Source: Macrostomum lignano (taxonomy: Eukaryota). Taken from it: 64,000 bases of DNA. Location of the stretch: assembly GCA_002269645.1 (NCBI GenBank), contig NIVC01000157.1:124001-188000 (forward strand), read 5' to 3'. A program made the translations under genes and the position numbers. This document shows, in pieces, positions 26,473 through 29,141 of this stretch (position 1 is the stretch's first letter; each line of letters starts with the position of its first letter). The notes beneath the pieces are model-generated. The model was not told the origin of the DNA, ran no database searches, and saw only the letters and a program-made list of their open reading frames with translations.

Positions 26473-29141
26473 ATGGACTCGAGTAGAAAGACTGCGCGGC
26501 GCCTTACTGTTTCTGTGCTGCTAGTAGCAGCAATTGCGGCCTGTCCTTGGGCTGATGCCTTCGCTGTGGCACCCTGGGACCAGGGACACGGTGAGTGACC
26601 TGTCCGTCTGTCTGTCTGTCTGTCTGTCTGTCTGTCTGTCTGTCTGTCTGTCTGTCTGTCTGTCTGTCTGTCTGTCTGTCTGTCTGTCTGTCTGTCTGTC
26701 TGTCTGTCTGTCTGTCTGTCTGTCTGTCTGTCTGTCTGTGTGTGTCTGTATGTCTTATTGTCTGTCTGTCTTAGTGTCTGTCTGTCTTAGTGTCCGTCTG
26801 TCCGTCTGTCTTAGTGTCTGTCTGTTCCACAAATCGACTACTCTGGTATCTGTGAGCTTCACACAATAAAAATCCATTCTCATAAAAGCCAGGACACGTG
26901 GAAGAAGTTTCAGAAATTCCAAACTCCCAGTGTTGGAACAGGTGCTGAATTTCTCAAAGCTCCAGTCACCCATTTCCGCTTTTGTTCAACAAAATTGGCA
27001 GACAAGTTGAAGCTGCCCCCCCACCTCTAGCTGAAAAATGCATCGCGGCAGTCTTCATGAATTTGCGGACGCAAAAAGCGTCAGGCTTCCTTTCGCCGCC
27101 AACCTTTGCAGATTTGAGCCCTACTCAAGATGCTGCGTCTGATGCTGCCTCTGCGTACGACGAGGGCAAGCGCTCAACAGATGGGAAAGCCGACGGTGAG
27201 GAGCAGTGAGGGCATGCGGATGTTGTTTGAAGCAGAACACCTGCCAGGCCCACTCTCTCCAGGGCTTTCGCTTATCGGTTATTCGCCTGCTCAGAAGCAT
27301 TAGCCGCCTAATTAATATTTTATACGATTTCGATTTCTTTTGCATGTTTTTCAATCTAGCGAAGTTACTCTTAACTAAGTACGCAATTGTGCTTAGATTG
27401 AATTATTGAGTATAACTGTAGCGTCATTAGAAAGCTGCTTCGGTCCCTAAATATTGAATTATTTCTTGGGTCGCTGTTTTGGGGAAGGCGCCGTTTTAAA
27501 GAAGGCGCCGTTTTTAGAAGGCGCTCGTTACGGAGGTGTAGTTTTATAAAAGGTGCCATTTTGGTGAAGGCGCCGTTTTGGGGTAGCGCCGTTTTAAGGG
27601 AAGGCACCGTTTTAAAGAAGGCGCTGTTTTAAGGGAAGGCGCCGTTTTAAAGAAGGCGCCGTTTTGAGGGAAGGCGCCGTTTTGAGGAAGGCGCCATTTT
27701 GGGGAAGGCGCCGTTTTGAGGGAAGGCGCCGATTTGAGGAAGGCGCCGTTTTGAAGGAAGGCGCCGTTTTGAGGAAGGTGCCGTTTTAAGGAAGGCGCCG
27801 TTTTAGGGAAGGTGCCGTTTTGAGGAAGGTGCCGTTTTGAGGAAGGCGCCGTTTTAAGGAGGGCGCCGTTTTGAGGAAGGCGCCGTTTTAAGGCACGTTT
27901 TAAAGAAGGCGCCGTTTTGAGGGAAGGCGCCGTTTTGAGGAAGGCGCCATTTTGGGGAAGGCGCCGTTTTGAGGGAAGGCGCCGATTTGAGGAAGGCGCC
28001 GTTTTGGGGAAGGCGCCGTTTTGAGGAAGGTGCCGTTTTAAGGAAGGCGCCGTTTTAGGGAAGGTGCCTTTTTGAGGAAGGTGCCGTTTTGAGGAAGGCG
28101 CCGTTTTAAGGAGGGCGCCGTTTTGAGGAAGGCGCCGTTTTAAGGCACGTTTTAAAGAAGGCGCCGTTTTGAGGGAAGGCGCCGTTTTGAGGAAGGCGCC
28201 ATTTTGGGAAAGGCGCCGTTTTGAGGGAAGGCGCCGATTTGAGGAAGGCGCCGTTTTGGGGAAGGCGCCGTTTTGAGGGAAGGCGCCGATTTGAGGAAGG
28301 CGCCGTTTTGAAGGAAGGCGCCGTTTTGAGGAAGGCGCCGTTTTAAGGAAGGCGCCGTTTTAGGGAAAGTGCCGTTTTGAGGAAGGTGCCGTTTTGGGGA
28401 AGGCGCCGTTTTAAGGAGGGCGCCGTTTTGAGGAAGGCGCCGTTTTAAGGCACGTTTTAAAGAAAGCGCCGTTTTGAGGGAAGGCGCCGTTTTGAGGAAG
28501 GCACCGTTTTTGGGAAGGCGCCGTTTTAGGGAAGGCACCGTTTTGGGGAAGGTGCCGTTTTGAGGAAGGCGCCGTTTTGGGGAAGGCGCCGTTTTAAGGG
28601 AAGGCGCCGTTTTAGGGAAGGCGCCGTTTTGGGGTAGCGCCGTTTTGGGGAAGGCGCCGTTTTGGGAAGGCGTCGCTTTGGGAAAAGTATCGTTTTAGGA
28701 ATTAAGGCACCGTTTCCGTAACGCGCCGTTTATAAGGAGGCGCCGTTTTAAGGAGGCGCCGTTTTAGGGATGACGCCGTTTTGGGGTAGGCGCTGTTTAG
28801 GGACGGCGCCGATTTTTAGAAGATGTCGTTTCATAAATGCGCTGCTTTTGGGATGGCGCTGTTTAGGGAGGCGCCGTGTTAAAAAAAGGCGTCGTTTTTT
28901 GAAACGCCGTTTCGGTAACTTTCAATCGGTTATAGTTGCTATCACAGTCAGTTTATCTTAAAGTCAACTGATCTAAAAAAACGCCAATTTCTCAGACCTG
29001 AGCAGTCAGTTTGGCGGCCACCTGCACTGGAGCGCCGAGGACCTGGTCTACCCGCAACCTTTGCCGGTATTCAAGCCGCTTCGAGGCAAACGGGCGCAAA
29101 ACCAAGCCGGCCCTTCGAAAGATGAACTCGAAGTAGACTGA
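26473..29141 (+). CDS. Putative neuropeptide prepro-precursor, 115 aa; exons 26473-26590, 27112-27195, 28996-29141
   Basis: [29 protein letters not shown] signal-like N-terminus; both introns GT-AG in phase 1; two Gly-Lys-Arg sites ([16 protein letters not shown]) and an acidic tail; TATA-like CATAAAA near 26388. Confidence 0.85.
26600..26825. repeat. (GTCT)n microsatellite in neuropeptide intron 1
   Basis: Direct tetranucleotide run just after the donor. Confidence 0.97.
27480..28900. repeat. ~19-20-bp minisatellite (aggaaggcgccgttttg)n in neuropeptide intron 2
   Basis: About 70 copies with internal block duplication. Confidence 0.97.

Follow-up and report, generated by a model that had tools for sequence, protein, structure and literature searches.

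Outside the mature peptide, the sequence of neuropeptide precursors can diverge beyond recognition. Precursors of the tachykinin-related peptides typically hold several short (~9–12 aa) peptide copies, and the natalisins of Drosophila end in F-x-P-x-R-amide. The signature of the tachykinin-related peptides is FX1GX2R-amide, and the motif of natalisin, which has been described for Panarthropoda only, is FX1X2X3R-amide (PMC9521575). Single-peptide prohormones have been confirmed in Schmidtea mediterranea, where Smed-npy-9, -10, and -11 consist of a signal peptide, one peptide of ~35–46 aa ended by X-G-K-R, and a short C-terminal flank, and where atypical ends, RPRL-amide for instance, also occur (Collins et al. 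2010, PMC2953531). For Macrostomum lignano, a homologue of the pc2 convertase with nervous-system expression has been reported (PMC4490696).

The gene described here was found in a 64-kb window, the whole stretch of DNA that was analysed, which matches M. lignano contig NIVC01000157.1 with 100% identity. Its layout is that of Smed-npy-9, -10, and -11, and its proposed peptide, like each of theirs, contains no cysteines. With the tachykinin-related and natalisin peptides it shares Phe at −5, a predicted Arg-amide at −1, and the order F-x-x-x-R-G followed by dibasic residues. It differs from the tachykinin-related precursors in having Pro where the motif has Gly (F-K/E-P-L-R) and one peptide of 37–40 aa rather than several short copies, and from natalisin in being a platyhelminth gene with a single-copy peptide, whereas natalisin is known from panarthropod, multi-copy precursors. 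Going by its sequence, the candidate belongs to none of the three families considered (tachykinin-related, natalisin, and NPY/NPF). We consider it about an even chance that the gene encodes a secretory pre-pro-protein, a candidate precursor of a peptide hormone or neuropeptide, for which the libraries searched contained no relatives beyond M. lignano.

Three exons on the plus strand (26473–26590, 27112–27195, and 28996–29141; GT..AG introns) join in phase to give a 348-nt CDS encoding 115 aa, and the translation of the joined CDS equals the protein of the original prediction exactly. Exon 1 (118 nt of CDS) opens with an ATG at 26473, carries codons 1–39 plus 1 nt, among them the signal-peptide-like segment at 26473–26559 (codons 1–29), and ends at the donor GTGAGT. 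Exon 2 (84 nt; acceptor tttgcAG, donor GTGAGG) is an in-frame cassette that contains the first GKR at 27165–27173. The CDS of exon 3 (acceptor ttctcAG) includes codon 94 (29073–29075), which is AAG here and specifies the Lys of FKPLR, and R97-G98-K99-R100 (29082–29093), which combines a Gly as potential amide donor with a dibasic site and also fits the furin-type R-X-K-R; it closes with the stop codon TGA at 29139–29141. An AATAAA polyadenylation signal is present on the same strand at 29258–29263, 117 nt 3′ of the stop codon. Both introns are of phase 1 and, as had been noticed from the letters, filled with satellite DNA: intron 1 (26591–27111, GTGAGT...CAG) holds (CTGT)x57 at 26600–26825, and intron 2 (27196–28995, GTGAGG...CAG) holds ~80 copies of the 17-bp minisatellite CGCCGTTTTAAGGAAGG at 27472–28815. 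The whole window is dominated by tandem repeats, and no further copies of the gene were detected within it by tblastn.

Upstream of the coding region, the sequence cttttgcAG (26424–26432, plus strand) lies directly 5′ of the annotated transcript start and is a candidate spliced-leader trans-splice acceptor. TFLCPRF, the first residues of all three GenBank 5′-partial coding sequences, maps to 26434, one base past the AG of this putative acceptor, and in the Mlig_3_7 annotation transcripts are split at trans-splice sites (PMC5730564). The 5′ UTR that follows (26433–26472, plus strand) is without an in-frame stop; it is therefore translated in the public models as FCRTFLCPRFQPDSRE, and the public entries are 5′-partial because the reading frame runs through it. 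A TATA-like CATAAAA is present at 26388, to which no weight was given since the transcript start looks trans-spliced.

The gene is real, transcribed, and alternatively spliced, and it is known in the databases as an unnamed protein. The original prediction had called it hidden and missed entirely by the open reading frame track; the latter is correct for that bacterial-style track only, and the gene itself is already annotated in both GenBank and UniProt. In GenBank the locus is BOX15_Mlig033437g1 (PAA89275.1), with a model that lacks exon 2, whereas UniProt A0A1I8GCJ1, with exon 2 included, is 100% identical over 100% of the 115-aa query. The same protein, at 98–100% identity, is represented by PAA89275.1, PAA82416.1 (g2), and PAA81780.1 (BOX15_Mlig020276g1) and, in UniProt, by A0A1I8GCJ1, A0A1I8GJL9, and A0A1I8J3K6. 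Names are either missing from these entries or automatic, and no description of them as a peptide precursor was found in the literature searched. The gene and its UniProt identifiers were likewise absent from the literature texts and M. lignano paper supplements searched for a site of expression. Independent public models reproduce the exon joins, so the gene model does not depend on the splice sites chosen in the original prediction. Moreover, the GenBank annotation of M. lignano was derived from RNA-seq and transcripts (PMC5730564), and the spliced transcripts on whose existence that prediction hinged therefore exist.

Exon 2 is included in some annotated isoforms and missing from others. 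It is present in P0001, P0005, P0006, and P0007 and skipped in P0002 and P0008. P0001 has no record as a called gene, and the ATG-start isoform sequences are absent from the cluster collection. Exon 2 behaves as a cassette because the GenBank model of the very same locus skips it; its DNA is 100% identical across all three genomic loci, yet it is skipped in some models. When it is skipped, the first GKR is lost and what remains is the signal peptide, one 40-aa peptide, a GKR, and a 15-aa tail. The putative and unusual first peptide (..AYDE-amide) and the GKR behind it are present in the sequence as had been proposed, but they are optional, since the cassette exon carries them.

The N-terminus of the protein is signal-peptide-like by heuristics, with an n-region of net +3, a 14-residue hydrophobic core (L11–C24), and A-D-A|F at residues 27–29. 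The core is too short for a membrane anchor, although the automatic name in UniProt is “Transmembrane protein.” Together with G58-K-R60 and R97-G98-K-R100, this N-terminus is in keeping with the combination of signal peptide and G-K-R sites from which the gene was picked. The peptide upstream of the second GKR comprises 37 aa if exon 2 is included and 40 aa if it is skipped, and is followed by GKR and 15 aa; no internal repeat was found in the protein. Small, cysteine-free, acidic, and disordered, the protein gave a mean pLDDT of 58 and a pTM of 0.21 in AlphaFold, with no globular fold and a sole helix at residues 4–22.

From these features we infer that the protein may be secreted, cleaved, amidated, and used in signalling. 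The signal peptide would be cut off after Ala29, and PC2 or a furin-type proprotein convertase would cleave after R-G-K-R100 and, if exon 2 is included, after G-K-R60 too. The basic residues would then be trimmed by a carboxypeptidase, and the exposed Gly would be converted to a C-terminal amide. This processing would yield a single long amidated peptide with PVF(K/E)PLR-NH2 at its C-terminus, together with an acidic tail of 15 aa and, when exon 2 is present, an acidic by-product of 28 aa.

The same features could also belong to a small secreted protein that has no signalling role and is made by a gland or another secretory cell; it might, for instance, be a lineage-specific secretion that evolves fast, and its GKR motifs would then be incidental or only a furin maturation site. 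We regard this as rather unlikely, although several observations fit it. R-X-K-R is the furin-type consensus of proprotein convertases and is also cleaved in non-neuronal secretory cells and in constitutive secretory pathways. A lone RGKR, as in the form that skips exon 2, is not rare by chance, the composition-matched shuffle for a single G[KR][KR] giving P(≥1) = 0.05, a value that is post hoc because the gene was picked for that motif. The disordered and acidic character of the protein, the mostly non-synonymous differences between its genomic copies, and the lack of relatives beyond the species in the libraries searched would also be in keeping with a gland secretion. Against it, a Gly stands exactly before both dibasic sites, and two G[KR][KR] sites in the 86 residues past the signal peptide are rarer than chance, with a shuffle P(≥2) of ~7e-4 that is equally post hoc. 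The size and layout of the protein, moreover, match those of proven single-peptide prohormones.

Three near-identical copies of the gene (~99% identity) are present in the genome, and comparison of these bears on whether the product is under selection. Coding differences among the copies number 2 non-synonymous against 1 synonymous and 3 against 1, which are very small counts, and dN/dS is ~1, an estimate that rests on just 3–4 differences because the copies are so alike. Exon divergence (~1%) is no lower than that of unique intron or flank sequence. One of the differences affects the proposed peptide itself: the FKPLR ending given in the original prediction is not fixed, since two of the three copies encode FEPLR (AAG to GAG, codon 94), and K94E reverses the charge at a position only four residues away from where the amide would be. 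Each of the three copies nevertheless keeps an intact reading frame, the two splice phases, the signal-peptide-like N-terminus, and the two GKR sites.

Searches for relatives beyond M. lignano, both word-seeded and exhaustive with HMMER against 1.84 billion representative proteins, returned none, a result that holds for the libraries searched, in which other Macrostomum species are possibly not represented. Pfam gave no match for the protein at E ≤ 10. Two hits that looked significant, one to a protein of lettuce (E 8e-10) and one to a RING protein of krill (E 5e-9), were rejected; each match is one weak 41–45 aa similarity rich in D, A, and S, with ~40% identity, that is multiplied by 4–11 tandem repeats in the target. 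FKPLRamide, KPLRamide, and FKPLRG were absent from the literature searched, where “PLRamide” and “LRamide” occur only as part of unrelated peptide names. No peptide ending in ..PLRG or ..LRGKR was found in the planarian prohormone catalogue, although a match to another named flatworm npp family may still exist, and the peptides listed in a paper on cestode neuropeptides included no match. The earlier remark that the second peptide, by its length and PLR ending, did not match a family its author could name agrees with the outcome of the protein, Pfam, and catalogue searches covered here.

These results also invite the explanation that the gene is a transcribed open reading frame of recent, possibly de novo, origin that is restricted to the species, is under little or no selection, and has no conserved peptide product. 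Copies that differ at dN/dS ~1 and as much in exons as in introns, the absence of homologues among the proteins searched, and the location of the gene in repeat-dominated DNA would all be expected of such a frame. So few differences, however, make for a limited selection test, and the features listed above as intact in every copy, as well as the general tendency of neuropeptide precursors to diverge outside the mature peptide, argue in the other direction. This explanation is considered unlikely, more so than a gland secretion.

Assignment to the tachykinin/natalisin (FxxxR-amide) class as one of its divergent forms, as in the original prediction, is highly improbable. F-K-P-L-R-G formally fits FX1X2X3R-amide, as does FEPLR-G in the other copies (PMC9521575), but the pattern is loose and of low information content. 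The F-x-P-x-R-amide endings of Drosophila natalisins are a further likeness. The tachykinin-related signature fails because its Gly is replaced by Pro and because the precursor has a single long peptide, not several short copies. The panarthropod distribution of natalisin, the FEPLR of two of the three copies, and the lack of sequence similarity to any such precursor in the libraries searched also stand against the assignment. A divergent NPY/NPF-superfamily precursor, suggested by a layout (signal peptide, 36–40 aa peptide, GKR, short C-terminal peptide) and peptide length identical to those of Smed-npy-9, -10, and -11 with their atypical endings, is hardly tenable and largely refuted by the features tested, because the peptide ends in KPLR rather than RxRF/Y-amide, has Tyr at −12 only instead of −10 and −17, is Pro-rich in its C-terminal third (four Pro in the last 12 residues, with no helix predicted there), comes from a gene without the intron near the C-terminal Arg codon, and matched neither the Pfam pancreatic-hormone family (E ≤ 10) nor, by BLASTP, Smed-npy-11.

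For the reading of the gene as a peptide-hormone or neuropeptide precursor, then, there is the verified gene model, the transcript-backed annotation, the signal-peptide-like features, the two GKR sites, the absence of a predicted fold, the single-peptide layout, and the pc2 homologue of M. lignano as a possible processing enzyme; against it there is the absence of a Pfam match and of a homologue beyond M. lignano in the libraries searched, the few and mostly non-synonymous differences with exons conserved no better than introns, K94E, the single GKR that is left without exon 2, and the cleavage of R-X-K-R in non-neuronal secretory cells too.

An orphan amidated-peptide precursor is a plausible description of the gene as judged from its sequence, and the gene is a reasonable entry for a list of neuropeptide candidates, not a discovery. 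Calls made from motifs only (signal peptide plus GKR) need support from orthologues or expression, a caution illustrated here because the supposedly diagnostic FKPLR varies among copies of one genome. It is very improbable that the gene founds a Macrostomum-specific family of amidated peptide hormones whose F-x-P-L-R-amide acts on a tachykinin/natalisin-type receptor; no natalisin-like ligand would have been known beyond Panarthropoda before it, and exon 2 would decide whether a 40-aa peptide is made or one of 37 aa together with an acidic, amidated by-product. Should the peptide prove real, an unrecognised signalling peptide would be added to those of M. lignano, a flatworm that serves as a model and is open to transgenesis and RNAi, and a cassette exon bearing a cleavage site would be shown to alter the products of a prohormone through alternative splicing.

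The three coding segments of the peptide gene (26473-26590, 27112-27195 and 28996-29141, forward strand) join into a 348-nt coding sequence with a TGA stop at 29139-29141, which gives exactly the 115-aa protein of the original prediction. Both introns lie in phase 1, with borders GTGAGT...tttgcAG and GTGAGG...ttctcAG, and an AATAAA is found at 29258, 117 nt downstream of the stop. As had been proposed, tandem repeats fill both introns, with (CTGT)x57 at 26600-26825 in intron 1 and ~80 copies of a 17-bp unit at 27472-28815 in intron 2. The ORF track did miss the gene, because the prokaryote-style ORF list yields only fragments there, a 52-aa ORF (exon 1) and a 75-aa ORF (exon 2 plus intron). 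Six-frame translation gives long "ORFs" that are mostly repeat artefacts, e.g. 58600-61293 (a 12-bp array) and 18210-20528 ((AGAT)x498). Tandem repeats occupy considerably more than one-third of the window, in at least 20 separate arrays. These include ~483 copies of the 17-bp unit TGACTGTCAGTGATAGT with strong GC skew (8.3 kb, 3860-12152) and three arrays, spanning 12 kb in both orientations, of the 21-bp unit GGCGCTAAAATGAGTGCCTGT and its reverse complement (37061-37492, 45038-45725 and 48652-49021). Adjoining the 8.3-kb satellite, a 190-aa ORF at 12231-12803 on the reverse strand matches C2H2 zinc fingers (PF00096, E 2.5e-10) and is possibly one exon from a gene of that class.

The peptide gene had been claimed to be hidden, but it is already annotated in GenBank and UniProt, though unnamed and uncharacterised. 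UniProt A0A1I8GCJ1 (Macrostomum lignano, a free-living flatworm) is 100% identical to the 115-aa protein over its full length and carries the automatic name "Transmembrane protein". Window positions 16473-32000 match GenBank NIVC01000157.1 (assembly Mlig_3_7) at 100% identity (0 mismatches in 15,528 bases), and the model at this locus is BOX15_Mlig033437g1 (PAA89275.1; 100 aa, 5'-partial). RNA-seq and transcript assemblies are the sole source of this annotation (StringTie, TACO, TBONE and TransDecoder; PMC5730564), so spliced transcripts, on which the prediction depended, exist.

Near-identical copies occur at two more syntenic loci, NIVC01000471.1 (Mlig033437g2) and NIVC01000513.1 (Mlig020276g1), both with a CCDC24 gene and a 532-aa gene upstream. 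Such redundancy is expected, since, according to its authors, Mlig_3_7 contains duplicated blocks of at least 95% identity that total 180 Mb (PMC5730564). In the window, GenBank places the CCDC24-domain gene (345 aa) at 16794-20865 on the forward strand, with (AGAT)x498 at 18401-20390 within an intron, and the 532-aa gene, which has no Pfam domain, at 21748-23832 on the reverse strand; the order of these two genes and the peptide gene is the same at all three homeologous loci. No genes are listed in the GenBank annotation of the locus for the 10 kb downstream (29142-39141). All three GenBank models begin one base past a cttttgcAG acceptor at 26424-26433, which points to spliced-leader trans-splicing of the mRNA, despite the nearest gene upstream of the acceptor sitting on the opposite strand.

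Exon 2 is a cassette exon. GenBank models of the window locus and NIVC01000471.1 join exon 1 straight to exon 3 (...WDQGH-DLSSQF...), and the exon is present in the UniProt models and in Mlig020276g1. Because its DNA is 100% identical across all three loci, the isoform difference reflects splicing or model choice rather than exon loss; the ±30-bp flanks are identical in L001, the one locus covered by the flank comparison. Isoforms are not attributable to particular loci, since multi-mapping reads cannot be placed among 99%-identical copies. At 84 nt, the exon is skipped in frame, which deletes the first GKR site and the odd ..AYDE-amide peptide.

The protein opens with an n-region of net charge +3; then come an uncharged core of 14 residues (L11-C24) and P-W-A-D-A|F, which meets the -3/-1 rule. 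Fourteen residues are too few to anchor a protein in the membrane, and the name "Transmembrane protein" therefore most likely stems from a putative signal peptide. The 86 residues beyond it are cysteine-free (pI 4.7), and AlphaFold2 without an alignment returned no confident fold (mean pLDDT 58, pTM 0.21), the sole helix spanning the signal peptide. Both proposed G-K-R sites are present; in composition-matched shuffles, at least two G[KR][KR] sites arise with P = 7e-4 and at least one with P = 0.05, values that are post hoc in that the motif itself led to the gene. The second site, R97-G-K-R100, also fits the furin-type cleavage consensus R-X-K/R-R and is therefore a strong predicted cleavage site, yet not exclusive to neuroendocrine cells. 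A pc2 homologue in M. lignano is expressed in the nervous system, and hatchlings die on its knock-down (PMC4490696).

We put at roughly one in two the probability that the gene encodes a secretory pre-pro-protein cut at RGKR, trimmed and amidated, with secretion, cleavage, amidation and signalling all predicted. The product would be a single long peptide ending in PVF(K/E)PLR-NH2 (37 aa with exon 2, 40 aa without), plus an acidic 15-aa tail. Inclusion of exon 2 would also release an acidic 28-aa peptide ending in ..AYDE-NH2; amidated acidic spacer peptides occur in other prohormones, so this by-product does not count against the reading. Without exon 2, the precursor is laid out exactly like Smed-npy-9, -10 and -11, confirmed planarian single-peptide prohormones (signal peptide, single ~35-46 aa peptide, GKR, short tail; PMC2953531 and its supplement).

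Instead of an amidated peptide, the gene may encode a gland secretion with no signalling role, a possible but doubtful alternative; the gene appears species-restricted, disordered and fast-changing, and a single RGKR would not be unusual at random. When 5.8 billion clusters were searched with word seeding, the only matches came from M. lignano, in libraries that may hold no other Macrostomum species, and Pfam gave no match to the 115-aa protein at E<=10. Scanning 1.84 billion representatives exhaustively with HMMER brought up two further matches (E 1e-9 to 1e-8), from Lactuca sativa (lettuce; XP_052619864.1) and Meganyctiphanes norvegica (krill; CAL4059192.1). Both are tandem-repeat proteins and were rejected as relatives: each holds one weak, compositionally biased 41-45 aa similarity, repeated 4-11 times, and the summed scores are inflated because it is counted at every repeat. 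Repeats can thus raise whole-sequence scores for short acidic queries. No peptide with an FKPLR-type ending was found in the planarian prohormone catalogue or the searchable literature, which covers flatworm peptide catalogues in part. Relatives thus appear to be absent outside M. lignano in the libraries searched, which possibly lack other Macrostomum species.

A young ORF under little constraint is unlikely. It would accord with dN/dS ~1, the lack of detectable relatives and the repeat-rich neighbourhood, but all three copies preserve the frame, the splice phases, both GKR sites and the signal-peptide-like N-terminus. Relative to the window copy, one locus has two non-synonymous changes to one synonymous and the other three to one, differences much too few for formal testing, which give no sign of purifying selection. 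Exons diverge by ~1%, not below unique intron and flank sequence (0 to 5%). V13A is shared by both other loci, and H39D occurs in one of them. The FKPLR ending originally named is not fixed: both other loci read FEPLR (codon 94, AAG to GAG), which turns a positive charge negative four residues from the predicted amidated C-terminus.

A relationship to tachykinin or natalisin is very improbable. Protostome tachykinin-related peptides are defined by FX1GX2R-amide (PMC9521575); the candidate has Pro in place of Gly and a single long peptide where several short ones would be usual, and was rejected from that family. Natalisin, described for Panarthropoda, is defined only by FX1X2X3R-amide (PMC9521575), a loose pattern that FKPLR and FEPLR formally match, but taxon and precursor layout do not agree, so that the proposed FxxxR-amide class holds only in this formal sense. 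A divergent NPY/NPF relative is scarcely tenable: the precursor layout matches, but the RxRF/Y-amide ending, the Tyr -10/-17 signature and a helical C-terminal half are lacking, and neither profile nor pairwise comparison detected similarity.

The original observation is thus confirmed and its interpretation supported in part. Because the defining tachykinin-related ending and layout are absent and natalisin and NPY/NPF are matched only partly, the gene is filed only as a generic candidate amidated-peptide precursor. It is a new candidate of this kind within an already annotated gene, and suits a specialist's candidate list.
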